The notes under the pieces are model-generated. The model was not told where the DNA came from and made no database searches. It saw only the letters and a program-made list of their open reading frames with translations. 45,269 nt of DNA from contig NW_005434475.1 in NCBI RefSeq assembly GCF_000315625.1, forward strand, positions 1 through 45,269, written 5' to 3'. This stretch comes from Guillardia theta CCMP2712 (taxonomy: Eukaryota; Protista; Cryptophyta). Of this stretch, positions 1 to 22,532 are shown one piece after another (the stretch's first letter is position 1; each line of letters starts with the position of its first letter). A program made the translations under genes and the position numbers.

Positions 1-3000
1 CAAGGCTGCCGTGGCCGAGCCTGCTTGCAGGCTGGCAGTGATCAGGAGCGTCCTAGACCCTCCCACGCTCTCCACAGCCATACTCCGTAAGCTCGTGTCC
101 GACAGCCATGCTGTGACCTCGCTAGCCGTGGGCGCCGCTCTTGCTATCGGAGAGTAGCCCGCCAGCCCTGCGCCGGCTCCTACCAATGTGACCGACAGGG
201 ATCCGGTCGACGGCACGTTTGACCGCAGGACAGAGCTCACTCTGGTCCTGTCTGCGCTGTACGCGTCTGTGACGCTGCTGACTCTTTCGTCTACGGTTAC
301 CGATACCCGCTGGCTGCCGCCGGGTCCCGAGGACTCGAGGCAGCTCAATGCCGTATCAGACAGCCAAGTCGAGGCCTCACAGGCGCTCAAGCCCGACCGA
401 CCTTGCAGCGAGTAGGCCGTGAAGCCGTAGCCTGCCCCGCCTACAGAGATACTCGCCGAGCCGCTTGCAGCTGCGTTCGATCGATACATGCCGCTTCCCG
501 ATCCCGCATCATACGATCCGGCGCTTGTGCGACTCGAAGCGTNNNNNNNNNNNNNNNNNNNNNNNNNNNNNNNNNNNNNNNNNNNNNNNNNNNNNNNNNN
601 NNNNNNNNNNNNNNNNNNNNNNNNNNNNNNNNNNNNNNNNNNNNNNNNNNNNNNNNNNNNNNNNNNNNNNNNNNNNNNNNNNNNNNNNNNNNNNNNNNNN
701 NNNNNNNNNNNNNNNNNNNNNNNNNNNNNNNNNNNNNNNNNNNNNNNNNNNNNNNNNNNNNNNNNNNNNNNNNNNNNNNNNNNNNNNNNNNNNNNNNNNN
801 NNNNNNNNNNNNNNNNNNNNNNNNNNNNNNNNNNNNNNNNNNNNNNNNNNNNNNNNNNNNNNNNNNNNNNNNNNNNCTCCGACTCCCAAACAAGAAAAAA
901 AAAGCAAAAAAAGAGAAAAGAGAAAAAAAGGGTTGTAGTCCCCGAGCCCCATCGCGGCTCCGATCACCGTCAAGCTCACTGATCGGACGATGCGTTTAGG
1001 TCTCTCCTGCTGCGACATCGCCGGCCCCTCCGCTGTGAAGGCCTCGGTCGTACTACCTACCTCCTGGCCTATCGTGATGTGTACTCGGGCGCTGCCTGCT
1101 GTCCTCGCGTGTAGTGCGACAGGTCAATGTCGAGTCCGACACCCACGCACTAGACTCCTGCGCAGTCCCCGCTATCCGCCCCTGTCCGGAGTAGTCCACA
1201 CTGCCGTACAAGGCTCCCTGCAACGTCACTTGCGCTGTCCCTGTCCCCGCCGCGTTCGCCCTGGTGAGCTCGCTCAAGCTCGGGACGTCTGCTGACAGCG
1301 CCTGCGTCAAGCTACCTGCCTGGAGCTCCACCGTTCCCGAAAATCGCAATGTCACGCCCGCGGCTCCCGCCGTCCGACAGCGTAGCGCAGTCTCCGATGT
1401 CCAGGCGGTCGCCTCGCACCCTGTGAGTCCGAGCCTCACCTGCACGGTGTATGATGACGTGGCAAGATGAGCCCCCTGTATGCTCAAGCTTGACGATCCC
1501 GTGCCGGCCTGGTTACGGACAAGCAGGGAGCTTGCTAGTACCTTGTCCCATGAGTACACCTCCGACCTGGTCCCCGCTGCCTCCTCTACCGTAACCGTCA
1601 CCCGCCTAGACCCTTCTGCCCCTGCACTGACTCGGCAGTGTAGGCTGCTGTCTGATACCCACGTCGAGGCCTCGCATGCTGTGAGCCCCGTCCTGCCGGC
1701 AGCCGTCCGACCTGACGTGCCTAGGTTATCGCCCTGTAGGCTGACGACGTATGCCGCTCCCGTGCTTGGAGCGTTGTCTAATCGCAGCGTGCTGGAGGTC
1801 GGCAGGTCCGTGCTGTACGCCTCCGTCCGCGACCCGACCGATGCGTCTACACTGAGCACCATGTGCGCAGTCCTTGTAGATTGACTCCCGACAAGACAGC
1901 GCACCGACGTCTGTGACTCCCAATCCGTAGCCTCACTGGACGACACCCCGCTCCGAGCGTGGGCCGAGTACACGGCATGACCGAAAAAGGTCCCCTGAAT
2001 CGTCGCGCTGATCGAGCCCGAGCTTGCGGCGTTCCTCCGCAAGGCGCCGCTTATCAAGTCAGAGTCCAAACTCAATATACCGGTCGAGGTCCCGACTTGA
2101 TACCCCGCTGTCAGCGAGGCTCGGGTCGAGCCGGCTACTCCTGCGCTGGCTCGGCAAGGCATCGATGTGCTCGACTGCCACTGCGTGCTCTCACACGAGG
2201 TGTAGCCCACGCGCGCTTGTCCCGTGCCGTCGTATGCGCCAAGCTGGCTCCCGTACACGGTCATGACAAGAGAGGCTGTGCCTGCAAGGTTTGCTGGGCT
2301 CATGACACTCACAGCTGCTGCGTCTACTGTCAGAGCTTCCGTCCGACTCCCCGCTACGACCCCAAGCGTTGCCAGGACGATATTCGATGCTCCAAGTCCG
2401 CTAGACGCCATGCACTGTACAGCCGACTCTGACGTCCACGCTGTAGCCTCGGAGGCCGTGTGTGCGATCGCTGCTCTGCCGGTGTGGCCGACGGATGCAA
2501 GGCCGCTTCCGTACATGGAGATGCTGACTGAGCCCGTGGCTGGCTTGTTGGTCACCAGCCCCTCGCTCAGCGACGGCTTGTCGGCCGTGAAAGCAGCCGT
2601 GGATGTACCGGCCTGCTCGCTACCGGTGACAACGACGGAGCGAGATGCTTGCCAGCTGCGACTCACACGACACAACAGCTGCGTGTATGATACCCACGCT
2701 GATGCCTCGCACCCTGTGTATCCAACCGTCGCTCGGATGCTGCTCTGGGCTAGCCCATACCCGCCCCGNNNNNNNNNNNNNNNNNNNNNNNNNNNNNNNN
2801 NNNNNNNNNNNNNNNNNNNNNNNNNNNNNNNNNNNNNNNNNNNNNNNNNNNNNNNNNNNNNNNNNNNNNNNNNNNNNNNNNNNNNNNNNNNNNNNNNNNN
2901 NNNNNNNNNNNNNNNNNNNNNNNNNNNNNNNNNNNNNNNNNNNNNNNNNNNNNNNNNNNNNNNNNNNNNNNNNNNNNNNNNNNNNNNNNNNNNNNNNNNN

Positions 3001-6000
3001 NNNNNNNNNNNNNNNNNNNNNNNNNNNNNNNNNNNNNNNNNNNNNNNNNNNNNNNNNNNNGTCGGTTTATGTTAAGGATGCTCACGCTCGCCTGATCATA
3101 CGAGAGTGCCTCCGTCACCGTACCCGGCCTCTCCCCGACGGACACTACCCCTCGTGAGGACCCGCCTCTCCGGCCCCGCTCCGCTCGACATCGCACAGCT
3201 GTGTCCGACTCCCACTCGCTGCTCTCGCTCCCTGATCCTCCCGTCCGACCCCAGCCCGTGTATCCGGCGACACCCAGGCCCGACCCATGCACTGTCAAGC
3301 TAGCTGAGCCTGTCGGCACCATGTTGGTACGGATCCCCTCGCTCAACACGACTCTATCTACGCTCAAGGCTGCCGTGGCCGAGCCTGCTTGCAGGCTGGC
3401 AGTGATCAGGAGCGTCCTAGACCCTCCCACGCTCTCCACAGCCATACTCCGTAAGCTCGTGTCCGACAGCCATGCTGTGACCTCGCTAGCCGTGGGCGCC
3501 GCTCTTGCTATCGGAGAGTAGCCCGCCAGCCCTGCGCCGGCTCCTACCAATGTGACCGACAGGGATCCGGTCGACGGCACGTTTGACCGCAGGACAGAGC
3601 TCACTCTGGTCCTGTCTGCGCTGTACGCGTCTGTGACGCTGCTGACTCTTTCGTCTACGGTTACCGATACCCGCTGGCTGCCGCCGGGTCCCGAGGACTC
3701 GAGGCAGCTCAATGCCGTATCAGACAGCCAAGTCGAGGCCTCACAGGCGCTCAAGCCCGACCGACCTTGCAGCGAGTAGGCCGTGAAGCCGTAGCCTGCC
3801 CCGCCTACAGAGATACTCGCCGAGCCGCTTGCAGCTGCGTTCGATCGATACATGCCGCTTCCCGATCCCGCATCATACGATCCGGCGCTTGTGCGACTCG
3901 AAGCGTCAGCTTCCATAGACACAATCACTGTCTTTGTCGCCCCGACCCCGCCCCCGCCCCGACACCGCACCGCCGTCTCCGACTCCCACTCCGTCGCCTC
4001 GCACCCGGTCCCTCCCTCCCGCGCCCTCCCCGTGTAGTCCCCGAGCCCCAGCCCCGACCCCGCTACCGTCACGCTCGCCGCCCCGGACCCCGGCCCGTTC
4101 CCGTCCGCCCCGACCCCGGACCCCGCCGGCCCGTCCGTCGAGTACGCCTCCGTCCTTGACCCGGCCTGCTCCCCGACCGTCGCCGCCACCCGCCTCGTCC
4201 GCCCGACCCCGCCCCCGCCCCGACACCGCACCGCCGTCTCCGACTCCCACTCCGTCGCCTCGCACCCGGTCCCTCCCTCCCGCGCCCTCCCCGTGTAGTC
4301 CCCGAGCCCCAGCCCCGACCCCGCTACCGTCACGCTCGCCGCCCCGGACCCCGGCCCGTTCCCGTCCGCCCCGACCCCGGACCCCGCCGGCCCGTCCGTC
4401 GAGTACGCCTCCGTCCTTGACCCGGCCTGCTCCCCGACCGTCGCCGCCACCCGCCCCGTCCGCCCGACCCCGCCCCCGCCCCGACACCGCACCGCCGTCT
4501 CCGACTCCCACTCCGTCGCCTCGCACCCGGTCCCTCCCTCCCGCGCCCTCCCCGTGTAGTCCCCGAGCCCCAGCCCCGACCCCGCTACCGTCACGCTCGC
4601 CGCCCCGGAAGAAGGCTGGTTGGGTCTCTCCTGCTGCGACATCGCCGGCCCCTCCGCTGTGAAGGCCTCGGTCGTACTGCCTANNNNNNNNNNNNNNNNN
4701 NNNNNNNNNNNNNNNNNNNNNNNNNNNNNNNNNNNNNNNNNNNNNNNNNNNNNNNNNNNNNNNNNNNNNNNNNNNNNNNNNNNNNNNNNNNNNNNNNNNN
4801 NNNNNNNNNNNNNNNNNNNNNNNNNNNNNNNNNNNNNNNNNNNNNNNNNNNNNNNNNNNNNNNNNNNNNNNNNNNNNNNNNNNNNNNNNNNNNNNNNNNN
4901 NNNNNNNNNNNNNNNNNNNNNNNNNNNNNNNNNNNNNNNNNNNNNNNNNNNNNNNNNNNNNNNNNNNNNNNNNNNNNNNNNNNNNNNNNNNNNNNNNNNN
5001 NNNNNNNNNNNNNNNNNNNNNNNNNNNNNNNNNNNNNNNNNNNNNNNNNNNNNNNNNNNNNNNNNNNNNNNNNNNNNNNNNNNNNNNNNNNNNNNNNNNN
5101 NNNNNNNNNNNNNNNNNNNNNNNNNNNNNNNNNNNNNNNNNNNNNNNNNNNNNNNNNNNNNNNNNNNNNNNNNNNNNNNNNNNNNNNNNNNNNNNNNNNN
5201 NNNNNNNNNNNNNNNNNNNNNNNNNNNNNNNNNNNNNNNNNNNNNNNNNNNNNNNNNNNNNNNNNNNNNNNNNNNNNNNNNNNNNNNNNNNNNNNNNNNN
5301 NNNNNNNNNNNNNNNCTGCCGGCAGCCGTCCGACCTGACGTGCCTAGGTTATCGCCCTGTAGGCTGACGACGTATGCCGCTCCCGTGCTTGGAGCGTTGT
5401 CTAATCGCAGCGTGCTGGAGGTCGGCAGGTCCGTGCTGTACGCCTCCGTCCGCGACCCGACCGATGCGTCTACACTGAGCACCATGTGCGCAGTCCTTGT
5501 AGATTGACTCCCGACAAGACAGCGCACCGACGTCTGTGACTCCCAATCCGTAGCCTCACTGGACGACACCCCGCTCCGAGCGTGGGCCGAGTACACGGCA
5601 TGACCGAAAAAGGTCCCCTGAATCGTCGCGCTGATCGAGCCCGAGCTTGCGGCGTTCCTCCGCAAGGCGCCGCTTATCAAGTCAGAGTCCAAACTCAATA
5701 TACCGGTCGAGGTCCCGACTTGATACCCCGCTGTCAGCGAGGCTCGGGTCGAGCCGGCTACTCCTGCGCTGGCTCGGCAAGGCATCGATGTGCTCGACTG
5801 CCACTGCGTGCTCTCACACGAGGTGTAGCCCACGCGCGCTTGTCCCGTGCCGTCGTATGCGCCAAGCTGGCTCCCGTACACGGTCATGACAAGAGAGGCT
5901 GTGCCTGCAAGGTTTGCTGGGCTCATGACACTCACAGCTGCTGCGTCTACTGTCAGAGCTTCCGTCCGACTCCCCGCTACGACCCCAAGCGTTGCCAGGA

Positions 6001-7960
6001 CGATATTCGATGCTCTAAGTCCGCTAGACGCCATGCACTGTACAGCCGACTCTGACGTCCACGCTGTAGCCTCGGAGGCCGTGTGTGCGATCGCTGCTCT
6101 GCCGGTGTGGCCGACGGATGCAAGGCCGCTTCCGTACATGGGAGATGCTGACTGAGCCCGTGGCTGGCTTGTTGGTCANNNNNNNNNNNNNNNNNNNNNN
6201 NNNNNNNNNNNNNNNNNNNNNNNNNNNNNNNNNNNNNNNNNNNNNNNNNNNNNNNNNNNNNNNNNNNNNNNNNNNNNNAGCGACGGCTTGTCGGCCGTGA
6301 AAGCAGCCGTGGATGTACCGGCCTGCTCGCTACCGGTGACAACGACGGAGCGAGATGCTTGCCAGCTGCGACTCACACGACACAACAGCTGCGTGTATGA
6401 TACCCACGCTGATGCCTCGCACCCTGTGTATCCAACCGTCGCTCGGATGCTGCTCTGGGCTAGCCCATACCCCGCCCCGATCACGGACAAGCTGATTGAG
6501 CCCNNNNNNNNNNNNNNNNNNNNNNNNNNNNNNNNNNNNNNNNNNNNNNNNNNNNNNNNNNNNNNNNNNNNNNNNNNNNNNNNNNNNNNNNNNNNNNNNN
6601 NNNCTCCCCGGCGTCCCGCTTTCTACTGTCAGCGACAGCCTGTGGGTCCGGCCTAGGCCTCCGGCCGCCAAGCATCGTATGCTGGTGTCCGACTCCCACC
6701 CAGTGCTTTCACAGCCCGACCGACCCAGACGACCCAGTGCTGTCGCATCCATGCTCCCCAGACCGGCTCCCAGCACGGTCACGCTTGAGGCCCCTGACCC
6801 TGGTCGGTTTATGTTAAGGATGCTCACGCTCGCCTGATCATACGAGAGTGCCTCCGTCACCGTACCCGGCCTCTCCCCGACGGACACTACCCCTCGTGAG
6901 GACCCGCCTCTCCGGCCCCGCTCCGCTCGACATCGCACAGCTGTGTCCGACTCCCACTCGCTGCTCTCGCTCCCTGATCCTCCCGTCCGACCCCAGCCCG
7001 TGTATCCGGCGACACCCAGGCCCGACCCATGCACTGTCAAGCTAGCTGAGCCTGTCGGCACCATGTTGGTACGGATCCCCTCGCTCAACACGACTCTATC
7101 TACGCTCAAGGCTGCCGTGGCCGAGCCTGCTTGCAGGCTGGCAGTGATCAGGAGCGTCCTAGACCCTCCCACGCTCTCCACAGCCATACTCCGTAAGCTC
7201 GTGTCCGACAGCCATGCTGTGACCTCGCTAGCCGTGGGCGCCGCTCTTGCTATCGGAGAGTAGCCCGCCAGCCCTGCGCCGGCTCCTACCAATGTGACCG
7301 ACAGGGATCCGGTCGACGGCACGTTTGACCGCAGGACAGAGCTCACTCTGGTCCTGTCTGCGCTGTACGCGTCTGTGACGCTGCTGACTCTTTCGTCTAC
7401 GGTTACCGATACCCGCTGGCTGCCGCCGGGTCCCGAGGACTCGAGGCAGCTCAATGCCGTATCAGACAGCCAAGTCGAGGCCTCACAGGCGCTCAAGCCC
7501 GACCGACCTTGCAGCGAGTAGGCCGTGAAGCCGTAGCCTGCCCCGCCTACAGAGATACTCGCCGAGCCGCTTGCAGCTGCGTTCGATCGATACATGCCGC
7601 TTCCCGATCCCGCATCATACGATCCGGCCCTTGTGCGNNNNNNNNNNNNNNNNNNNNNNNNNNNNNNNNNNNNNNNNNNNNNNNNNNNNNNNNNNNNNNN
7701 NNNNNNNNNNNNNNNNNNNNNNNNNNNNNNNNNNNNNGTCTTTGTCCGCCCGACCCCGCCCCCGCCCCGACACCGCACCGCCGTCTCCGACTCCCACTCC
7801 GTCGCCTCGCACCCGGTCCCTCCCTCCCGCGCCCTCCCCGTGTAGTCCCCGAGCCCCATCGCGGCTCCGATCACCGTCAAGCTCGCCGCCCCGGACCCCG
7901 GCCCGTTCCCGTCCGCCCCGACCCCGGACCCCGCCGGCCCGTCCGTCGAGTACGCCTCCG
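1..7960 (-). repeat. Higher-order (~3.6 kb) near-identical GC-rich super-repeat of TIG units, at least 3 partial copies
   Basis: 1-542 = 3365-3906 = 7107-~7627; 1693-2768 = 5316-~6480; 3061-3890 = 6803-7630. Identical off-frame ORF translations recur (188/3552/7294; 1959/5582). The exact period is blurred by estimated gap sizes. Confidence 0.9.
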
Positions 7961-10900
7961 TTTTTGTTCCTTGTGTCTCAAAGGTGGTTGCTATTATTTT
8001 TGCTGTCTTTTGAATCTGTTTTTGTGTTTGGCAGAGTAGATTTGTCTCAGATTGCCATCGTGTTGACTCGCAATTACTTGGTCCGAGTTTGGCTTTGTTT
8101 GTGAAGTCTGCTTTGGAAATTCCACTTCCCAACACAGTCACACTCGTCGATCCCGTGCTTGGTGTGTTGGCGCGCAGNNNNNNNNNNNNNNNNNNNNNNN
8201 NNNNNNNNNNNNNNNNNNNNNNNNNNNNNNNNNNNNNNNNNNNNNNNNNNNNNNNNNNNNNNNNNNNNNNNNNNNNNNCAGAGGCCAAGCAGACCACGCT
8301 TGTGTCGGACTGCCAGGTACTGGACTCGCACGCAGTTCCGCTAAGCGAGATTGTTGGAGTGAATGTCGAGTCAAGACCGAACCCAAGCCCTTGAACCGTA
8401 AGGCTGACAGTACCAGTTGCATGCTGGTTTGAGAAAATCGAGGTTGAATGTGCGGGCCTCTCGACGGAGAACATCTGTGTTGCCGTTCCAACGTTTACTT
8501 CGAGACTTAAAAGAAACCGATGGGTGGTTGACACGCTTGCTCCTGCAAAGCACCTCACGCTACTGTCAGACATCCAGCTCGTCGACTCGCATCCGGTTTG
8601 ACCTTCGTGGGCACGGATCGTGTAATCATAAAGACCCATCCCATTTCCCAACACAGTCACACTCGTCGATCCCGTGCTTGGTGTGTTGGCGCGCAGCATG
8701 CGCGAAATGCCCGCAGCATCTATGGAAACCATTTGTGTCGAGCTCCCTACTACCTCCATGATCGTACTGGCTATCCGTCTTGTCTTCCCTGCTCCGCCAG
8801 AGGCCAAGCAGACCACGCTTGTGTCGGACTGCCAGGTACTGGACTCGCACGCAGTTCCGCTAAGCGAGATTGTTGGAGTGAATGTCGAGTCAAGACCGAA
8901 CCCAAGCCCTTGAACCGTAAGGCTGACAGTACCAGTTGCATGCTGGTTTGAGAAAATCGAGGTTGAATGTGCGGGCCTCTCGACGGAGAACATCTGTGTT
9001 GCCGTTCCAACGTTTACTTCGAGACTTAAAAGAAACCGATGGGTGGTTGACACGCTTGCTCCTGCAAAGCACCTCACGCTACTGTCAGACATCCAGCTCG
9101 TCGACTCGCATCCGGTTTGACCTTCGTGGGCACGGATCGTGTAATCATAAAGACCCATCCCATTTCCCAACACAGTCACACTCATCGATCCCGTGCTTGG
9201 TGCGTTGGCGCGCAGCATGCGCGAAATGCCCGCAGCATCTATGGAAACCATTTGTGTCGAGCTCCCTACTACCTCCATGATCGTACTGGCTATCCGTCTT
9301 GTCTTCCCTGCTCCGCCAGAGGCCAAGCAGACCACGCTTGTGTCGGACTGCCAGGTACTGGACTCGCACGCAGTTCCGCTAAGCGAGATTGTTGGAGTGA
9401 ATGTCGAGTCAAGACCGAACCCAAGCCCTTGAACCGTAAGGCTGACAGTACCAGTTGCATGCTGATTAGACGTCTGGGAGGCACTCTGTAGTGGAATTTG
9501 GTATGATATAGCAAAGGAAACACTCCCAACGCTCTCAAAAGTTGTGATTGAAACCTGACCACTTTTTGAACTGCCTTGCGAGAAGAAGCAGAGAATTGCA
9601 GTATCAGACCTCCATTCAGTGCTTTCACATGATGTTCCAAGGACTCTCGCTGCATTGCTTGAAGAATACAAATCGAACTGAGCGCCCAAAACAGTAGCAC
9701 TGATAGAACCTGTTGAAATAGAATTTGATCTATGAATTGATGATGCGCTTGAAGTATCGAACGAAAACATTTCAGTTGAGGTTCCAAGACTCAAATGTGC
9801 AGTTACAGCAATTCGTTGTGAGCTCCTTGTAGCGAATTCGAATCGAACAGAAATTGCAGAATCTGAAGTCCATATTGTCGCTTCACTAGGCGTGAAACCG
9901 ATTCGAATCTGAGCGGAAGAACTGTAAACCATGTAAGAAGAACCTTCAATCAGAATGGTAGTAGTATTTGCTTGTGCTGCATTCGTGAGGAATGTAGTAC
10001 TCAACGACGGAACTTGAAAGGAAAAAATGTTTGTTGTCGTGTCCACTTGCTCCGATGCTGTAATTTCAATTCGCTTTGAATGTCCACCACCGCTGGAAAC
10101 CAGGCAAAGCACATTCGTAGATGACATCCACGACGTAGATTCACAAGAAGTTGAACCAACTTTCGAGAATTGGCTGTATGAAACTCTTCCAAATTCGGAT
10201 TCTCCAAAAATGGTGATAGAGGCTGTTCCAGTGGATGCTCTATTCGTTGGATGGACACCACTAAATACTGGCCTGTCAGAAGAGAATGCAAATGTTATTG
10301 TCCCCAAATTGTTTTCAGATGTAACCGCAATTAGCCTAGATCCTCCAACAAAATTTGACGATTTGCATTGCAAGTCGGAGGTTGAAACCCACATAGTTGC
10401 AGGAAAGGAAGTAAAACCAATTCTCCCTGATTGCGACGTAGAAATTGCGTCGAAATTTTGTCCAAGTATTGTGACTGAGTGTATCGTGAAAAAACCAAAA
10501 TTTCCTCTGTGCAACGTAGATATTGCAGGTAAATCAGCTGAAACCATTTCAGTGCTTGTTCCAACTACAAGATTTACAGTAGAGCGAAGTCGGTGAGTAA
10601 ATGCATAGGTATTTGGGGCTAAGGCTCGAACTGAAGTATCTGCACTCCATTGCGTACTTTCGTAAGATGTGTACAAAGATCTTACCCTTACAGTTGCATC
10701 AAACGATCCGAAACTGCTTCCATAAAATGTTAAACTGACACTTCCTGTTCTTGGAGCATTTTGCGCAATATTGACGCTCACACTGGGTTCATCAAATGAG
10801 AGCGAAAAGGAAGTAGTGCCAGATTGAGAAGATGTTACATAGATTTTCTTAGAATGTCCTAACCCATGATTAGAAAATCCTCTCACACTTGTGTCGGAAA

Positions 10901-13900
10901 TCCAAACTGAGCTTTCCGAAGAAGACTGTTCCATCCTCCCACGAATCGTAGCGCCAAATTCACCAAATCCGTTACCATGAAAAGTAAAAAATAAGGATCC
11001 TGTGGTTGGAAAATTTGTCAAAGGCACGCTACTAATTATTGGATGGACGTAGGAAAAAACTTCTGAGGTGGTGCCAACTTGAAGTCCTGCAGTCATTAAA
11101 GATTTCCGCGTCTGCAACAATCCTGTGCTAATAAGTGCAGCGATGGATGTATCTGACAACCATGAAGTTGCAGCAGGAGCTGTAAAACCATACCTTGCAA
11201 AATTGGAGTTGGCATATGTTCCAAAGAACGATCCAAATACTGAAATGCTTGCTGATCCCGAGGCATGAAAATTGTTTGGCAGAATAGAGCTGATGATCGG
11301 CAGGTCGCTTGAAAGAAACACAGAAATTGTTCCCACGTTTATCCCGACGGTGATCTGTACAGCAATAGAGCCACCGATCATTAGATTTCCAAGGCACACG
11401 ACCTCTGATGTTGAATGCCATTTGGTGTATTCACAACTTGTGTAACCAATCCTGGCTATGTCACAATAAGCGACTTGACCAAAGCCAGAACCAATAACAT
11501 TCAATACAACGGACCCTGTGTTTGCTGTATTCGTTGTGAAGTCCCTGCTGCCGTGTAAAGTTGGAGAATCATACGAATAACCTTGAGACACGGTTCCTAC
11601 CTTTTGCCCAACTGTAAGCATTGTCGCGAGGGTCGAGAATACACCAGTAGTACTCAAGCCTCTGACACTTGTTTGGGAAGTCCAAGATGTGCTTTGTTGG
11701 GAAGAAGATCCTATTCGCCCTCTTGAACTCGATGAGAATTGACCAAAATTGCTACCAAAAATGGATATGCTCGTACTTCCTGTTACAGGACGATTTCTTC
11801 CTGAAGATACACTTTCCGATGGAACATCATAAGACAACATTTCTGTGACTGTCCATGCGATTGACAAGTCAATTGTCACACTCAGATACATAGTTCCATC
11901 AATGCCTTCTGAGACTTTGCATCGAAGACTGCTGTCGGAAACCCATTGTGACGATTCGCATGCAGATCCATCGATCCTTTCACTTGGTGTTGGATCAGTA
12001 GTACCAAAGTTCAAACCTGCAACAGTCAAACTCACAGATCCACTGCCTGGAGTGTTGTAATGTCTGTCAAAAATTGGAAGAATAATTATGTAAGCCGAAA
12101 CATACGAAAAGTAAGCAAATTCAGCTCCTTGCCCATCAGTAATCAATTCTACAATTTGATTTGCTCCTCGCCCCTGAGGCGTTCTAACAACAACGGTATC
12201 ATAAGATGTTCGAGATTCTACTAACGCGCTAGTCCCACCAATTCGTGCCTGAACCATGATCTTAGCAGGTCCGAGATTTGAACCATAAAGGGTCACTTTT
12301 ATCCCTCCCGAAATTGGTCCAAAGTCTGGGGATATTGCTGTGATTGTTGGTGTTCCTGCGAATGTAAACCATGTGCTTCCATAAATTTCCTGCTCACTTA
12401 AAGCATCTGATGATCGCCTTGCACTGACAGAAGAGTCTCCATAACCTTGATACGAAGACGGAACTTTACAGAGGAGAATTGACGACGAATCAGGTTCAGA
12501 AGACGACGAAATCACATATTGATTATTGCCTTCAAATGCAGATACAATTGAATCGTACATTCCTTTCACATTCCCTCCAGAAAACGAACAGAACGTTGAG
12601 ACTGAGGAGTCAAATCCAATGCCAACTATGGTGAGCAAATATGCATCACCCAAAAACAAGTTTTTTCTGGGGAACACAGAGAGTAAAGATGATTCATATG
12701 TGAAGGAAGAACCACCCCGCATAAGAGCTTCAACAATGATTGACTTCTCTCCAATTACTAAAACATTCCTGATGCATATTCCAGAGACACATCCATTGCA
12801 GCCAATAGTTGAGCAAGCTGCAACACAAGGGAGAGAATCATATGATCCACCGGAACATAAAAATTCTGGAACGATCAGACCATTTTCGTCATAAAATGTC
12901 TTTCTTTGCAACAAGAATGATGAAGATGACGCCTTAGCTTCCGAAACCAGTTCGGGTATAAAACAAGTGATTTCATTTAAACCCACAGGGACGACTGGCT
13001 TCGAGAATACAACGGAATTTTGAGAATTTGACAAAAGCGATCTCACATTTTGATCTGTTGGAGCAAGTACATCAGAAAGAGAACCAGACACAAATCCACA
13101 TATGTATTGCGAAGCCCCGGAGTAATCAAAGTTGAAACCAAATACTGTTAGTTGCAATCCACCCAGCACAGTGTCGGAATAAACACTAAGAGACGTCCAA
13201 GCATCCTTGATTGTCAAACGAAAGGGGCTACCAGAAATGTGTGGAAAATTAACAAAATCTTCAGCGGGAATGGTAGTTTTGGTAGCCAAGTAGTACTGCC
13301 AATTCAAACTGACTCCTTGAACCCCACCTGTCCCGTTCGGTTGCTTGTACTCCATCACAATGTCGTAGTACCCCCCTGCAGTCCCCAGGTAAATGGTCCC
13401 GCTGTTCTCCGTACCCTCTAAGCTCGTCCACTGATCGATCAGCATCACGTTGTCCACCCAAAGCCTCACTCGCTCTACCCAAGACCTCACCGATGCGTAC
13501 ATCGTGTAGACTGAAGCGAGGGGAGGGCGGACAAAGCCAGACCAACGGATACTGTATGGAGAATCTCCGGGGAGGGAAGGGAAGGGCTTTGTACCAGGAG
13601 CAGCACTAAAATCAATCGAGTATGTTAGGAGGGGGTAGCAAGCTTGCTCAGCAAAGGAATTCAGTACACAGTAGAGCAATTGCAATTGATTCAAGAGTTT
13701 GTTCGTTAGGAAAACATTCAAGTCATACAATCCAGTGATCGTTGTAATGTTGTAAGAGAAAATATATCGCCCATTGTTCAGATCTGAAATTGAATATGCA
13801 AGAACTGTATTTCTAGACTGATGAAATATAGAATATGCCTTGATCAAAAAGGTATCACCTCCTTTTCTAACCTCATTCCCGAATTCATCCTTACAAAGTA

Positions 13901-16900
13901 CTGTAAATGTTGCAAGAAGACCAGCAATGCTAGACGAAACCCCGGCACCAACAGCTGTAATAAAAGTTGAAGCACAAGCACCTGGTTCGATGATCATCTT
14001 TGTGGGAATTGAATTGTTACCTAGCACTTGTTGATTTGTGAAATACAAGACGGGATTCAAATCTGCTCCTTGCGAAAACGTAAGGGAAAGCGTACCTTCA
14101 GATTTCTCTGTATGAACGAATCGAACCGTAAATTGATAAACTTTCCGAGGTTGAATAAGAATATCCAAGGTGACAGTAGTAAGATTTTCCATCGATGCCG
14201 ATGTCCTTGCAATGTGCTCTCCGTTGAGGATTACACTTGACATTCCATCGGATCTCAAAGCTAGATTAAAAATTCCTTGTTCTTGTACAAAGAGGTATCC
14301 TGACCATTCAATGCATCGTGAATTTAAAGGTGAACTTCGAAAGATGCGCACTTCTGGCACAATTTCATTGTAAAATGGAGTCTGGCATGAAGAATCCAGA
14401 AAATAGATTGCTTGTAAACCATAATCCATCAAGCATGAGAGGTACACATTGTAGTCGCCAGATCGAGTCGCAGTAATAGACAAATAGTCAACTGATGAAT
14501 TATTTGAATCAAACAGGTAAGCTGAATGTAAGGAGGCATCTCCGACATACGATTGAGGCTCGATTTGAATTAAAACAGGTATCATGTCAAGTCTGTCAAT
14601 CTGATTTCCAAATCTATCTAGGAAATTCACCTGAAAATATAACAAAGATGGACTTGTAGCTTCAAAATCAGATAAATTGGTATACGAGAGTGATGCGCAC
14701 ACTTTCCCTGGAAATATACTCAGATTGAAAGGCAACTTCTCAGATACTAATTGATGCGAAAATAAATAACGGAAATCTACTTTTGTTTTGTACATCAAAA
14801 ATCCTGAAAATTCCAGAAGTAATCCCTGCTGCCCCCCTGTCCCGTTCGGTTGCTTGTACTCCATCACAATGTCGTAGTACCCCCCTGCAGTCCCCAGGTA
14901 AATGGTCCCGCTGTTCTCCGTACCCTCTAAGCTCGTCCACTGATCGATCAGCATCACGTTGTCCACCCAAAGCCTCACTCGCTCTACCCAAGACCTCACC
15001 GATGCGTACATCGTGTAGACTGAAGCGAGGGGAGGGCGGACAAAGCCAGACCAACGGATACTGTATGGAGAATCTCCGGGGAGGGAAGGGAAGGGCTTTG
15101 TACCAGGAGCAGCACTGAAATCGATGGATGAATGATCTACCGTGCTCAACGAATATCCAAACTCCTGTGCATATGTAATCATTTGTAGACCTCCAGACTG
15201 TGGGATTTCAATAAAAAGATTTGAAGTTGTGGCCTTGGTCGGGCTTGCCATTTCTATAGAATAAGTTTTCAAATCATTTGATGACTTAACTATTCCGTGA
15301 GTCATTCTTTCATTCTCTATATTCAATTTCATGTATACAATTACACTTTGAGGTTCCACAGGGCTATTTCCGTATGCATCAAATAGAACAACAGTGAAGA
15401 ATGATTTCGAGCCAGCTGTCGCGATAGAAATGAAGGATGTCACGATAGAGAATTGAAATAAATTTGGCAGAATCCGTAAGTCAAGTTTCACAATATCGTT
15501 AACCGAAGGGTAAGCGCTTAAATATTTAGTTGGAACCACTTGGAAATCAAAATATTCCGAGGTGTTAGCAATCGACCATTCGAGTTGGCAAAAGCAAGCA
15601 GCAGATTTGCCTCTCTTGTAAAACAATTCTGTGTATGCAAAAGTTTGATTATTGACGTATAAGCTTCCAAGTGGTAAAAGGCCTGATAAACTTGACCATT
15701 GATCGATTATTAGATTGTTGTCAATCCACAATTGAACCCTGTCACTTGGATACTGCAATCGAATTTGAAAGAAGAACTTTGCAGATACATACAGAGAAAT
15801 GATTCCCTGCCATCTTAATGTTGAAGATTTCACGAAATCTGCTTTCAGATCAGACCAAGATATCTGTACTGATCTCTCCTGGGAAGAAGAATCATATAAT
15901 TCCTGATATTGACCATCTTTTAAAATTGAAAGCGTCAAGCCACTACCATTGAAGAAATAGATCCAGGGTCTGGCATACGTGCTACTGACGGAATATAACA
16001 ATTCAGAAATGTTGCTGGTAAGTTGTCGATCATATCCCAGAATCAAGTTTTCGTTTTGGTCAACCATTAGACTGTGGAATTCTGTATTATTTATGACAGA
16101 ACCAAATTGGTCCCGCAAAGATATTCGAATGAACGAAGGTGATCCTGCAGTGGCAAGTGATAAACCTTGTCCAGCCATCAAACTATTGGAAAATGATACT
16201 GAAGTCGTAGCCACAAAAATTTCATAATCGAGTAATGATCCATTGAGATTGATAAATAGCATATAATTCATGTTTCCCACATCATTCACTGCAAAGGATA
16301 TGATTCCTTCAACTCCAAATTGGCAATCAAATGATTGATTGATATATTTGGATTTCGGAACTTCAACTTCAACGAAGTAATTTTGACAAGAAATATTGTT
16401 TTGAAACTCATCCCTTGCAATAATTTGAAGGATTGAAACAACCCCAGCCGTCACTGTCGAGAGACCATCTCCTGTAACAACACTTTGATTCCTGTCCAAT
16501 TTGTTCGGACTGAAATATAACGAAGAATCAAAAGTCAATACACCATAGAAGAATTCAATGGACGTGCTGTTAAACGACAATCCCTGCTGCCCCCCTGTCC
16601 CGTTCGGTTGCTTGTACTCCATCACAATGTCGTAGTACCCCCCTGCAGTCCCCAGGTAAATGGTCCCGCTGTTCTCCGTACCCTCTAAGCTCGTCCACTG
16701 ATCGATCAGCATCACGTTGTCCACCCAAAGCCTCACTCGCTCTACCCAAGACCTCACCGATGCGTACATCGTGTAGACTGAAGCGAGGGGAGGGCGGACA
16801 AAGCCAGACCAACGGATACTGTATGGAGAATCTCCGGGGAGGGAAGGGAAGGGCTTTGTACCAGGAGCAGCACTAAAATCCATTGTGGCATTTGAAGCAC

Positions 16901-19900
16901 TGGCAAAGTTATCCATGAATTCGAAAGTGTAGTATGTGGCAGTCAGTTCACCGGAATACAAAATGTAACCTAGCAGGTCGATGACTCCAGCTCTTGTAAT
17001 GCTAAAATTGCCAACTACCATCCCATTTTCATGCTGTAGTGACGACACCTTCGAAGGCAAAGACTGACTTGTTGCTACTGAAGCCCAACTCAACATGGTA
17101 GCATCATAATGATTGCCGAATTGGTCGAATGCTTGAACCGTAAAAGCATATGCAACACCGACTGTTCCAAAACTGCCAGTCGACCAATTTACAGTTGTTT
17201 TGGGGGCAAAGACAGCACTTGGAGCAACGAAGGACCAATAGCTAGTTGAACAAATCATGTTCGTGACACTCAATAGGCTCAGTAGAGGAATTGCAGGCAC
17301 TTGGAAGCCTCTGCTTTCCCAGGTAAGTGAAATTTCATCATTTTTTGATAAGAATAGCAAATTTCCATTGAGTGCATAGTAAGTGTCTTGATTTAAAAAT
17401 AAAGAAGAAACGTATGTTATATTCCTCTTGACCTTGCCTTTGAAAATATATAAATTATCAACAGAAATGCTAGCATCTATTTGATCCTTGCCATCACTGG
17501 TATTAGATGATATCAACAAAGAGAAGCCAACCAAATGAGACCATTGAGATTCCAAATATCCAGAAAGTCTGACTTGCCGAGTATCCTCTTCCAAAACAAA
17601 CGACAAGGCTGGAAGTAATTTGTTTGAACTTGTGAGGCCGAATCCAGCATCCGAAAGGCTGTAGAATGTTGCAGAGATCACTTCTCTGACAACATTCATG
17701 AATTCCAACATGTAGAACCCAGATTGATTCAGGGTGTGATGGAATCCAAAAGAGCAATTAAAAATTGTGCAAGACGAAGTGACTGCAACAAAATTATTCT
17801 CTCTCTCCAATTCAGTGAACAGAGGACCCCTCGCTCTCATCAAAACGTCGTAAGGCATTGCATCTAAGACATTCATCTCATCTCGGAATCGCAAGCTGAA
17901 TGAAATCTTGCTCCCAGCTTCAAGCAGCGAAAGAGAATTCCCGGAACATGAACTGCTAATGGACTCTTGATGATATGATGAACGATGAGAAATTGGAAAA
18001 CTAAGAGATGAAAGGAAAACTTTTCCATACAAGTATTCTGTTGCAATAGCTTCAATTGCAGATGTACCATTTTGCTTCCAACTGAAAATTATTCCCTGCT
18101 GCCCCCCTGTCCCGTTCGGTTGCTTGTACTCCATCACAATGTCGTAGTACCCCCCTGCAGTCCCCAGGTAAATGGTCCCGCTGTTCTCCGTACCCTCTAA
18201 GCTCGTCCACTGATCGATCAGCATCACGTTGTCCACCCAAAGCCTCACTCGCTCTACCCAAGACCTCACCGATGCGTACATCGTGTAGACTGAAGCGAGG
18301 GGAGGGCGGACAAAGCCAGACCAACGGATACTGTATGGAGAATCTCCGGGGAGGGAAGGGAAGGGCTTTGTACCAGGAGCAGCACTGAAGTAGGGTTGTT
18401 CCAGCATTGCTAAAGTTGAATTGAATGAGATTGAGCTAGTATTGACTGAAATGCTGACGTTTAAACCTCCTTGTTCGCTATACCAAATTATTACGTTCTT
18501 TGCAGATCCCCCATCCAGTGATACATAACTGCCGAGAGATATGCTCTGCCTTGTGTCGAATAGATGGTTTAGGGTAAAGGTGCTTCGGTTAAAGAACTGA
18601 ACCTGAAAAATTAATTCATGGCTTGTTTTAGTGACTATATTGCCATATTCATCTCTCAGTGATATCTGAAAATACGAGTCTATGAAAGGATTTGAAGGTA
18701 CAAGAATTGGCCGTAAGACAGAGGATTTGGATAGGACAACATTCGATGGAGCAACTGTTACATTGAAATCCATCAAAAAGAATTTTTCATCAAATAAAAA
18801 TGAATTGTTTACTTCTGTAGCAGTAGAATTTCCATAAATCCAAAGCAACTTGTTATTAGACAGAATATCCAAAGTAGATGCATATATTTTGACCTGATAC
18901 ACTTCCTTACTAGACAAGAAAACATGTTTTTGATGCAAGGGACAGGAAGTGAAAATAGATATTTCTCCAACCCAGATTTCGAAACAAGCGCTGCTTGTAA
19001 CGTTGGTTTCAAGGAAGATTGAAAAATATTCGGATATGGGTACAGAAAGGAAACCGATCCACGATGCAGTACTTGATGTGTAATTCCACTTTCGAGGCGT
19101 AAAAGATTTCAAAAGATATAACGAAATCGTCTCTGCACCAGATAAAGAAGGAAAAATAGACACTTCATACAATCCTCTCTCACAGCTTGGAAGTTCCAAA
19201 AGTCTCTTGTTGCTTTCATATTCCATGGAGAAGGATAATTTTCTATCAATAAAGTTTCCATAAACATCTGTGCACGTTATGGCAAAAGTCACAGGAATCC
19301 CTGCTGTCAAAATGCTTTGCCTTGTACCAACTTGATAACATCTGTTCAAATCGTTGGATGCGACTGTCACATTGACGTAATTCGATGTCAACAAAGAGGA
19401 CCAAAATCTAAAATCGGCAAGCTTTTGTTTGGACTCATCTTTGAGACGAAGACCAAACTTGAAATCCACCAAACTCTCGAATTGAAACGATTTCATTTCG
19501 AAGCGATATGGGTGACCAACCTCCAAATATAGTGTGTAGATCAAATTCGTTGGATCCAATGTTCGATATAAATATTCACATGTATCGACTTCAAAGAAAT
19601 CACTTATCAATATCAAAACACATGCATTTGTAGATATTGAAACTTCGTAGGTGGAAGTATCTTCGACCAATAGAACTCCTGACCACTGAATGCTTTTTAT
19701 TTTCGTTTGGAGCTGATTTTCAACATTCAATTGGTCTATGAAATCAGGGAAGGATGAATGGATCTGACTCAATAATGGATGTTCGAAATTGTAATCTCCA
19801 TAATATGTTGCATGTAATCCTGTCAAATTGGAAAACAGAACATCCACTTGGAAAGAGCCGCTGCGAGTGAAGACTAACCATATTGTACTCAAAGATGGAT

Positions 19901-22532
19901 TCTCTGTACTGATGCTGTTTAAATGCAAGCCATCGGAGTCGAAGATATGGGTTCTTATTCGGAAGTAAGGAATTGCACTTAAAAAATTCCCGAAAGAATC
20001 CTTGAAAACGATCCCAAACTGACAAGCTTCGCCTGCGGAAATGGAGGTGACACTTAAATTATACAAAACCGCAGTTGAAATCATACTAGAAGAATGAATC
20101 TGAAGACTAAGGGGTGAATTGTTCATCTCTGAAAAAACCAACAAAGCATTTAACACTCCCCTTGTCGAATTTGGATAAATCCAAGACAAAGAAGTTCCCT
20201 GCTGCCCCCCTGTCCCGTTCGGTTGCTTGTACTCCATCACAATGTCGTAGTACCCCCCTGCAGTCCCCAGGTAAATGGTCCCGCTGTTCTCCGTACCCTC
20301 TAAGCTCGTCCACTGATCGATCAGCATCACGTTGTCCACCCAAAGCCTCACTCGCTCTACCCAAGACCTCACCGATGCGTACATCGTGTAGACTGAAGCG
20401 AGGGGAGGGCGGACAAAGCCAGACCAACGGATACTGTATGCAGTGTCTATTGGAATGCAGTGGAACAAGGATTGTAACAAATTTCCACTGAAATCAATAT
20501 GAGGTTCAATTTGAGAATGTAATGCTTGTCTGGATTCTGTAACATAGAATGTCGCAAAAATTCCAGTACCGATTGGATATCTCACGTGCAGGTCTACTAA
20601 ACCTGTTAAATTGTAACGAAATGCGATGTGATATGGGCAAAAGATTGTATTCTTCATCAAAATGCTGAAATCTTCATGAACGGCAGACCGCAAAAATACG
20701 TGCAAATTCCAAGAATTTTCTGGAAATTGAAGCTCATTTCCGAAGGTGTCAGTGAAAAGCAAGCAGAAAGAGATACTGTTTCCTGCAAAGAGCGTTGACA
20801 AATTCGGCAAACTTACTGAGACCGATGAAACATTATTATTTGGAGACACATATATGTTGAAAGAGGGGTACTCTCTTTGATGCATCATTTGAAAGATTGA
20901 TATTCTGTAAAAGCCACTTACTGTAAAAGTATACTCCATTCGTGATCGAAGTTCAGTGCAATCTTGAAATACTGAGGAAGTGACAAAATTGCGGAATCCG
21001 GCTTGCCTTTGTTCAAGCAAAAGTTTGCAATTGTACAAATGATGAGCTGAATCACTAATTCCAAAATAGTCACGAACGAAAAACCAAAATGTGCTCGGCA
21101 CTCCGACTGTTAACAGGGAAGCTCCAGATCCAAGGGTAATCAAGGATTCCCGACGAGCTATCACTGATATCACATTGACTTTCAGTGGGCTCCCATCGAT
21201 AAAAAGTAGATCATTTTGAGAATTTTTCAAGGCAACCCAGAGATGATATGTGCCTTGCCGAACTGGCAACCACTTGAAACTGCATGTGCTATTTTTACAC
21301 GACATCCGATGGGCAGACGTCTGAATTATTCCAGAATTTGGAGAAAATCTAGACTCTCGGAAATGAATCAGTAGAAAGCAATCGGTAATTGCAACATTCA
21401 ATCTACCAATGATCCTCCACAGAGTGAAAATATGACAAAATCTGCCGGAAATAATCGTTTGTGGACAATCACTTTGAATCATTAAGTTTCGTGCCATGTC
21501 TCTGATGCTTAACTTTGGAGTTCTTGTAGAAGCGTCAGAGAAGAAACTGTAGGCCTGCTGCATATCCGAGGAACTCATCAGATTTCTAAACCAGCTTGCA
21601 CGTTCAGGATGTCTTTGAGACCAAGAAATGTCTATCTGTCTATTGCCATCATAATCAATCGATGAATTTTTTTGTTTGACGGAAACAACAAATGGGCTTC
21701 CTAGAATGTGCTCATGGGCACAACAAAAGTTTTCATTCGCAATGCATGTAGCTGTTCTGTTGCCATGTTCTGGAAACCATTTGAGAAAAAAATGTCTGGA
21801 ACTAGTATTTGGAAAGTAGAAAAGAAAAGTATAGTACCTCAAGCCTTGCATCTGGAAAGAAGGTCACAACCAAGAAGTGACTCAAGATGAAATTTTGATT
21901 TACCCGAAAATATCCCTGATTACAACCGTGCCCTTGACATGAGGCTGGAGGGATAATCAATCGTCCGTCAAGATATAGCATGGAACCATCAGATGCCGTG
22001 AAAACGTATTCGGTAGATTCAAAATTTCTCAAGAATCCTTGCAATCTCACACTTCCTGGAAATGTTCTTTGCTTGCACGCGGTTTCAAAATCAAAGAGCC
22101 GAGATCCGACCACATGTCTAAATGAATCGTCGTAAAACGTGGCCCAGAGTCGTCCACCTGCAAAAACTCCATCAGACAAACCCAAATAATTCAAACACAT
22201 TCTACATTTTAGAGTCTGGACGTCAAGGAGGCTTTTTCCAGCTTCTGGTACTTTGTATCTGACGTTGCTTTCCGCCTTGGATATGACGTAACTCAAAAAG
22301 GTTCTTGAATTTCCTTGCAAAGTTGCAATAAATTGATCATTTCTTGATTGGATTGAAAAGTATTGCTGTCCCGAGATATGACCTTGAAAGTTTGAAAGGA
22401 ACCTGCAGTAGCCAGTGAAATGGCACTTCCGTGCGCTGTGCTCATACTTGCACATACTTCTTCGTGTAAAAAATAATCGGACATCAGCGTTGGCAAGCAG
22501 AGGATTATCAGCAAAACGCTTTCTTTGTTCAT
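1..22532 (-). CDS. Giant secreted/surface protein (>7,400 aa, 3' end outside window): signal peptide + filamin-type Ig repeats with inserted PA14 domains + long IPT/TIG-like repeat array (fibrocystin-like domain mix)
   Basis: ATG 22532 gives MNKESVLLIILCLPTLMS (hydrophobic leader), then a filamin-like start (AHGSAISLATAGSFQTFKVISRDSN). Continues via ORFs 21802-22455, 6330-21851 (5173 aa), 2750-6139 and 1053-2675. Filamin motifs: G.GLS..TAG....F.I..RD.FGN and HISGSPF. PA14 motifs: YSIRWSGF...VRLWVDN..LIDQW...YYDIVMEY. IPT motif: PTITAISPDFGPISGGIKVTLYGSNLG. Frame breaks occur at the N-gaps and near 1090, 2760, 6141, 21780-21837 and ~22360. Confidence 0.88.
3940..4608 (-). repeat. 261-bp tandem repeat (~2.6 copies), extremely C-rich on + strand, one TIG unit each
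   Basis: gcgccctccccgtgtagtcc recurs at 4021, 4282 and 4543; encodes ...GRAREGGTGCEATEWESETAVRCRGGGGVGR...; another copy at 7745-7960. Confidence 0.95.
8126..9464 (-). repeat. 519-bp tandem repeat (~2.6 copies; two TIG units per copy)
   Basis: ORF pairs offset by exactly 519 (8598/9117, 8626/9145, 8674/9193) with only a couple of substitutions (NAPSTGSMS vs NTPSTGSTS). Confidence 0.95.
13327..13607 (-). repeat. Identical PA14-core cassette, copy A
   Basis: Encodes SAAPGTKPFPSLPGDSPYSIRWSGFVRPP...YKQPNGTG; same nucleotide sequence as copies B-E. Confidence 0.95.
14824..15116 (-). repeat. Identical PA14-core cassette, copy B (293 nt)
   Basis: ccctgctgcccccctgtcccg...ccaggagcagcact; the off-frame translation MVWLCPPSPRF...QATERDR is identical in all five copies. 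Confidence 0.95.
16582..16874 (-). repeat. Identical PA14-core cassette, copy C
   Basis: Same 293 nt as copy B, offset 1758. Confidence 0.95.
18094..18386 (-). repeat. Identical PA14-core cassette, copy D
   Basis: Same 293 nt as copy C, offset 1512. Confidence 0.95.
20197..20440 (-). repeat. Identical PA14-core cassette, copy E (shorter, lacks the SAAPGTKPFPSLPGDSP part)
   Basis: Identity runs from YSIRWSGF to GGQQG; offset 2103 from copy D. Confidence 0.95.

Follow-up and report, generated by a model that had tools for sequence, protein, structure and literature searches.

How do five short blocks inside one giant gene remain identical down to their silent sites while the sequence around them has diverged almost completely? 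The question is raised by a 45,269-nt stretch of Guillardia theta CCMP2712 DNA (NW_005434475.1, hereafter the window), which is the whole of contig C199 in an 87.1-Mb assembly of 669 contigs. It carries a giant minus-strand open reading frame (ORF) in which the core of a PA14 domain recurs as five cassettes, named here c1 to c5. Our analysis indicates that ongoing gene conversion among these five cores very probably accounts for the pattern. Such conversion would be non-allelic, intragenic and without crossing-over, limited by homology and biased toward guanine and cytosine (GC). The ORF and its cassettes are located as follows.

6330-21851, minus strand: giant ORF of 5173 codons, with filamin-type Ig and PA14 repeats over the N-terminal 2950 amino acids and IPT/TIG repeats over the C-terminal 2220, assigned with Pfam
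13327-13613, minus strand: cassette c1, last in the protein, its tract a few nucleotides short at the C-terminal edge (GGVQG vs GGQQG)
14821-15119, minus strand: cassette c2, full length
16579-16880, minus strand: cassette c3, full length
18092-18389, minus strand: cassette c4, full length, encoding SAAPGTKPFPSLPGDSPYSIRWSGF...KQPNGTGGQQG
20195-20440, minus strand: cassette c5, first in the protein (amino acids about 471-552), the shortest tract

Five identical PA14 cores between diverged flanks

Repeat search, MAFFT alignment and exact-run extension identified the five cassettes as direct copies of one repeat family, 100% identical to one another. Exact-run extension between pairs of cassettes gave uninterrupted identity over 232-297 nt with all synonymous sites included, confirming the identity first noticed in a sequence-only reading of this locus, whose block coordinates proved right to within a few bases. 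The start-to-start distances from c1 to c5 were 1509, 1758, 1512 and 2103 nt, irregular as that reading had described and each divisible by 3. Its order of the copies required correction: because the gene is read from the minus strand, the series of cassettes in the protein begins with c5 (20195) and ends with c1 (13327). About 80-97 residues are encoded per cassette, (SAAPGTKPFPSLPGDSP)YSIRWSGFVRPP...EYKQPNGTGG(QQG).

When the five copies were aligned by MAFFT together with 150-nt flanks, an unbroken block of invariant columns was obtained with unalignable sequence on both sides. The 30 nt outside each cassette edge matched at 5-20 of 30 positions, which is background, and the sharp edges noted earlier thus stand. 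The ends of the tracts vary among copies. In c1 a few nucleotides are missing at one end; c5 is truncated at the opposite end, where it lacks the N-terminal 46-50 nt of the cassette as well as the predicted G-quadruplex (G4) motif discussed below. A TTT/TTC polymorphism at the cassette edge is common to copies pairwise. Differing tract ends of this kind are expected of separate conversion events rather than of a fixed module.

The flanks presented the opposite picture. Segment-wise BLAST showed that the five repeat units are homologous throughout, yet only about 35% identical with the cassette included. In a codon alignment of the five units, scored in 20-codon windows, amino-acid identity outside the cassette was 12-24% and identity at third positions about 30%, while inside the cassette every identity measure was 1.00, third positions included. 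The flanks are old and diverged to saturation, in line with the motif-level similarity that had been attributed to them. Identity at synonymous sites, sharp edges and unrelated flanks together rule out tandem duplication, as had been argued from the sequence, and speak for gene conversion directed to the PA14 core, the domain-targeted process that the sequence-only reading had put forward.

The blocks each code for a PA14 domain core (Pfam PF07691). Over the giant ORF, Pfam scored PA14 at 238.6 bits in five stretches (cut-off 24), Filamin at 49.8 bits and TIG at 178 bits, and the best PA14 stretch covered profile positions 33-146 of 147. The last PA14 domain was modelled with AlphaFold2, and the model was confident exactly over the cassette part, with predicted local distance difference test (pLDDT) values of 85-95. 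The top Foldseek matches of this model were the PA14 domains of Clostridium anti-sigma-factor PA14-domain proteins (6qdi and 6qe7; E 6e-8, 36-40% identity), and further matches included domain 1 of anthrax protective antigen, Flo1, Flo5 and Epa1. The cassette-bearing domain is thus predicted to adopt the PA14 beta-sandwich fold. The cassette does not include the first strands of the domain (GLxATYY...) or its last strand, all of which have diverged. By analogy with the family, these domains are putative carbohydrate binders.

Intervening PA14 domains had been described in all four intervals between the cassettes. Three of these were recovered, each under the Pfam cut-off of 24 bits.

19491-19823, minus strand: degenerate PA14-like domain between c5 and c4, 17.7 bits
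15693-15944, minus strand: degenerate PA14-like domain between c3 and c2, 20 bits
14070-14327, minus strand: degenerate PA14-like domain between c2 and c1, 20 bits

Nothing was detected in the remaining interval, at about 17330-17670. The description of the cassettes as overwriting every second module is only roughly true.

Independent reads, a diverged strain and the search for a donor

The window is a draft contig with N gaps, and repeats are error-prone in such contigs, so the five sites might truly differ and have been collapsed by the assembler or polisher. Read-derived contigs were compared with window positions 13100-18600, using a 2021 DNA run (X1) and a 2011 data set (X4), both from the same strain, and a run labelled as a freshwater metagenome (X7). 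The X1 and X4 contigs connected every flank with the cassette and contained 0 differing letters over these 5.5 kb. The cassette core was a single contig in each, of 232 nt with a depth of 460 in X1 (about 64 in the flanks) and of 294 nt with a depth of 16 in X4 (about 5 in the flanks). Depth ratios in X4 and X7 fit the five assembled copies. The k-mer depth in X1, taken over that of the flanks, was 7.2x for the cassette core, 5.6x for the part common to c1-c4 and 3.9x for the part common to c2-c5. A collapse is contradicted by the absence of differing letters and the multi-copy depth of the single cassette contigs, by the size of the blocks, which are below 300 nt and lie within unique flanks, and by the recurrence of the structure in the metagenomic relative and of the pattern on a second contig (C36), both described below. 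We give an assembly or consensus artefact next to no credence.

The X7 contigs represent a relative about 2% diverged in this gene, with flanks that differ from the reference at 65 of 3009 nt (0-3.6% per contig). The 35 listed flank differences comprised 18 synonymous and 17 non-synonymous changes, 20 of them at third positions. The X7 cassette core was one 240-nt contig with a depth of 36 vs about 8 in the flanks (about 4.5x), and it carried 4 differences from the reference. One further difference was found in the adjoining cassette part. All 5 cassette differences are synonymous third-position changes, mostly exchanges between C and G. No contig of the reference cassette type was present in X7, and within the reference the five copies show 0 differences. 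The whole frame is coding and constrained in both strains, the cassette more so than its flanks. The cassette contig spans 18093-18332 in X7 and 18106-18337 in X1, a hint that tract ends differ slightly from one strain to the other.

Copies that are alike within each strain and different between strains read as concerted evolution. If each lineage is credited with half of the 1.7% core divergence, over about 1370 nt, then homogenisation that ended ahead of the split between the strains should have left the five reference copies with roughly ten copy-specific differences, and none was seen. Conversion is accordingly both recurrent and recent. The same comparison bears on the idea that nucleotide-level selection, exerted on an embedded RNA or DNA element, holds the copies identical without any conversion. 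Identity that reaches synonymous sites is what such selection would produce, but 5 synonymous sites are different in the related strain, apparently in all copies together, so that these sites are free to change. A search of positions 12500-21000 for RNA elements returned 0 Rfam matches, and the cassette on C36 is unrelated in sequence. Selection of this kind is, in our judgement, a highly improbable cause of the identity.

A GC-rich donor elsewhere in the genome had been proposed as the source of the cassettes. The proposal was not borne out: a DNA search of the entire 87-Mb assembly matched only the five sites and found no cassette DNA elsewhere. At the protein level, 91 PA14 matches were spread over about nine giant genes, the best of those other than self reaching 47% identity. 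An all-against-all BLASTN comparison of the nine paralog loci gave one other homogenised case, a gene on contig C36, with the following features.

C36 240180-257021, minus strand: paralogous PA14/filamin gene of 5614 codons with its own homogenised PA14-core cassette
C36 248142-248444, 250156-250461, 254242-254590 and 255619-255967: four cassette copies of about 300 nt, 99.7-100% identical
C36 251199-251373: fifth copy, 91-93% identical, sharing only 175 nt

The flanks on C36 follow the same step pattern as those on C199. The C36 cassette (ATYYDSPD...SGTYDFG) has about 47% protein identity to that of C199, starts at the very start of the PA14 domain and ends about 35 residues earlier than the C199 cassette. 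Boundaries that are specific to each gene resemble conversion tracts rather than a fixed module.

Internal repeats of at least 90% identity were absent from the seven other PA14-array loci (C72, C1, C10, C59, C97, C4 and C24; about 165 kb). Among the first 26 of 72 giant homologs, PA14/filamin giants, including the one from Hanusia phi, contained no near-identical internal stretches at the protein level; the 72 homologs come from metagenomes, Hanusia phi and bacteria, and short-read assemblies break at such repeats, so this negative says little. An exception among the 26 was P0025, which has internal repeats of 85-92% identity and a different domain make-up. Two side observations concern the same family. 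An open frame of 11,325 codons with PA14 domains lies on C10 at about 20000-70000, with no internal repeat of at least 90% identity in the 50 kb covered, and the PA14 gene family thus includes extremely long intron-free exons. C97:113582-113890 and C446:1292-1600 are PA14-like matches that do not differ from each other, both containing one TGA and one TAG, and represent either a duplicated pseudogene piece or one locus assembled twice.

These results also bear on the model with which the sequence-only reading had concluded, in which a dedicated module-swapping system made a recent, one-off replacement of alternate PA14 modules from a GC-rich outside donor. The sharp edges would fit such a replacement, as would the GC content of the cassettes (0.56), which is near that of GC-rich parts of the contig, and the 7.2x depth in X1 vs 5 copies leaves room for unassembled ones. 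Against it stand the absence of a donor from the assembly, the variation of tract ends among copies and the second gene on C36, which carries a different cassette with other domain boundaries. The diverged strain has the same sites occupied and its own cassette variant in all copies, which implies that homogenisation was recurrent. Neither an associated enzyme gene nor terminal repeats nor target duplications were seen for the cassettes, and the best candidate for transposon-like ends, an 11/14 inverted match at the cassette termini, is at chance level among 7 such pairs in 400 nt. We consider the replacement model very unlikely. An undescribed swapping system is not needed, as the pattern is a homogenising one with varying edges, and the diverged strain shows ordinary concerted evolution.

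An in-frame mobile element, similar to a miniature inverted-repeat transposable element or an intein, was also considered as a candidate. It was rejected on the grounds that the PA14 cores of paralogs are homologous to the cassette, which completes a domain together with its flanks and has no convincing terminal repeats.

GC content and predicted G-quadruplexes

In 100-nt bins, the GC content was 0.53-0.59 within the blocks and 0.30-0.45 outside them, which corroborates the contrast with AT-rich flanks reported from the sequence. The ten homogenised cores of the two cassette families had a GC content of 0.56 and a third-position GC content (GC3) of 0.70, vs 0.42 in their flanks. By comparison, the 55 non-homogenised PA14 cores from 9 loci had a GC content of 0.47 and a GC3 of 0.52, vs 0.48 in flanks. 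On C36, the cassettes reached 0.60-0.64 and their flanks 0.41-0.49. Where c5 escaped conversion, its sequence is AT-rich and flank-like. Compared with the consensus of the other four copies, the diverging fifth copy on C36 is shifted toward AT at 8 sites vs 1, a count that is unpolarised and has a p of about 0.1 given the composition. As GC is raised in two independent cassette families and not in the 55 non-homogenised cores, a GC-rich foreign donor is unnecessary. The GC-richness is better read as a probable outcome of conversion, being the pattern expected of GC-biased gene conversion.

Gene conversion among the five cores is supported by the identity of the copies, their edges, the absence of a donor, the concerted change between strains, the replicate in a paralog and the GC enrichment specific to converted cores. 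The mechanism that we infer behind it would be homology-limited, GC-biased in repair and continuous since the units were duplicated. The repeat units are old, with flanks diverged to saturation, and only the PA14 core would retain nucleotide identity sufficient for homologous repair from a sister copy. Identity would permit conversion and conversion would restore identity, in a feedback. Tract ends would pile up where homology stops, making the edges sharp and nearly coincident, and repeated GC-biased conversion would lift the converted stretch above its AT-rich surroundings in GC content. The PA14 core would in addition be under purifying selection.

Several points weigh against this explanation. 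No conversion event was directly seen, and the bias toward GC is unpolarised by an outgroup. The excess depth in X1 could reflect GC-dependent coverage or one or two unassembled copies, conceivably including a donor. The X7 sequences are metagenome contigs, which drop rare variants, and the changes shared by the X7 copies rest on depth (36 vs about 8) and on the lack of a reference-type contig. A continuous process also requires that conversion has operated since the units were young, for long enough that the flanks reached saturation. The alternative to such continuity, a late spread of the cassette into already diverged cores, is conceivable, although it would be more unusual and need a less ordinary mechanism.

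A scan for canonical G4 motifs (G3+N1-7) suggested a possible refinement of the conversion model. The following motifs were found in the cassettes.

13569-13586, plus strand: G4 motif GGGGAGGGAAGGGAAGGG, 18 nt, on the template strand, in c1
15078-15095 (c2), 16836-16853 (c3) and 18348-18365 (c4), plus strand: the same motif GGGGAGGGAAGGGAAGGG
C36 248228, 250244, 251297, 254372 and 255749, coding strand: G4 motif of the C36 gene, 24 nt, in 5 of 5 cassettes

Canonical motifs in the AT-rich PA14 part of C199 occurred only in cassettes, on the template strand of four of the five copies (none in c5). The C36 motif was the only one in 19.5 kb, and its position in the PA14 domain differs from that in C199. 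No G4 motif was present in 105 kb of the non-homogenised PA14 arrays of C72, C10, C97 and C4. Shuffles that keep the composition contained such a motif at a rate of 2-6% for C199 and of 4-12% for C36.

A G4 in each cassette may stall replication or transcription, leaving a gap or break that is repaired from a sister cassette and thereby focusing conversion. We hold this refinement as possible but unlikely. The confinement of canonical motifs to cassettes in the AT-rich PA14 parts of both homogenised genes favours it, as do two details of the tracts: the c5 tract stops 8 nt before the place of its missing motif, and in the partly diverged fifth C36 copy identity reaches 98.5% across the central 136 nt that surround its G4. 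G4-dependent gene conversion is moreover established for Neisseria pilE (PMC3547852, PMC13463697). On the other side, the observation is post hoc and comes from two independent families only, in which the motif lies on opposite strands. In C199 it is placed near the tract edge rather than the centre, and c5 is identical despite having no motif. The GC enrichment caused by biased conversion would itself make runs of G or C, for example in Pro and Gly codons. Doubtful to a slightly greater degree is the extension of this idea, by which the predicted cis-acting G4 would be a self-focusing homogenising device that evolved twice and keeps the lectin cores identical while the rest diverges.

The host gene and known systems

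The gene that contains the five converted cores probably extends beyond its ORF on both sides.

2750-6139 and 1053-2675, minus strand: two more IPT/TIG reading frames, parted from the giant ORF by N gaps only
21802-22532, minus strand: probable 5' exons, identified by eye

The 3' part of the giant ORF contains three N gaps of 100 nt each. The IPT/TIG frames at 1053-6139 are probably its 3' continuation, after which the gene runs off the contig. At the 5' end, the ORF at 22293-22532 (minus strand) begins with the signal-peptide-like MNKESVLLIILCLPTLMS, recognised by eye, with a start at about 22532. The ORF at 21802-22455 (minus strand) contains a PA14-like stretch by eye, in which Pfam detects nothing. 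Frame changes among these probable exons imply short introns. The encoded PA14/filamin/IPT-TIG protein is probably secreted. Raw RNA reads from run X14, of which about 6% was sampled, gave 8 reads for this gene, mostly imperfect. Runs X2 and X3 contain 80-100% of the sequence words, and their RNA nature is only a guess. A side observation in the IPT/TIG part is a 673-nt segment that recurs in tandem, offset by a period of 519 nt, at 99.4% identity (8279-8951 vs 8798-9470), directly after the N gap at 8178-8278. The repeat at 8279-9470 looks like an ordinary recent tandem duplication, with more copies perhaps collapsed in the gap.

GC-biased gene conversion is known from multigene families such as mammalian histone and Hsp70 paralogs and avian HINTW. 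The C199 gene resembles these in that the rise in GC and GC3 is specific to the converted stretches, and differs in that the direction of substitution is unpolarised for its cassettes. A survey of evidence for GC-biased conversion across eukaryotes (PMC5635611) lists G. theta with 3 chromosomes, 26% GC and no signal, an entry that we take to be the nucleomorph.

Concerted evolution of duplicates by non-allelic (ectopic) gene conversion has been reviewed (PMC3924837) and surveyed (bioRxiv 10.1101/135152). The cassettes agree with it in that paralogous segments are identical within a genome, silent sites included, and differ between strains. They agree also in their discrete tracts of a few hundred bases with unconverted flanks and no crossing-over products seen. 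What departs from the usual case is that the partners in C199 are non-adjacent domains in one reading frame, that the tract is part of a domain, and that the contrast with the flanks is extreme, 100% identity vs saturation.

Two groups of surface-protein genes offer further comparisons. The yeast FLO genes encode PA14-bearing adhesins whose repeats are shaped by ectopic recombination (PMC3512402), and they share with the C199 gene the combination of a large surface protein, PA14 domains and repeats. The recombining units in FLO genes are Ser/Thr-rich tandem repeats or whole paralogs, giving chimaeras and length change, whereas in C199 the PA14 cores themselves are homogenised and the unit number and flanks are untouched. 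The G4-dependent pilin antigenic variation of Neisseria gonorrhoeae (PMC3547852, PMC13463697) and the vlsE cassette system (PMC9159922) form the second group. As in pilE, segmental conversion would affect a surface-protein gene with a G4 motif next to or within the converted stretch, the C199 motif being a predicted one. Both pilE and vlsE copy from silent, diverse donors and so generate variation, while C199 is without silent donors and the result is uniformity. A cassette-variation system of the type of pilE/pilS, vlsE or the variant surface glycoproteins (VSG) was rejected, there being no extragenic copy and all copies being identical and in frame in one gene.

Herein, our findings reveal a new example of a known process, concerted evolution by gene conversion with a GC signature, and no new kind of genetic system. 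We found no literature on the Guillardia PA14 giants or on conversion in them. Two warnings follow for work on this family: such cassettes break short-read assemblies of these giant genes, and trees of PA14-repeat domains in this gene family will mislead. The locus provides an unusually clean natural case of conversion confined to part of a protein domain, with a replicate in a paralog, and the between-strain comparison shows the process still running. It also provides a first, local hint that conversion in the nuclear genome of a cryptophyte is GC-biased, and a testable connection of G4 motifs with conversion hot spots. If that connection proves true, the result would be a eukaryotic counterpart to the G4 system of Neisseria pilE, one that homogenises and in which identical cores might, speculatively, serve the multivalent binding of a single ligand.

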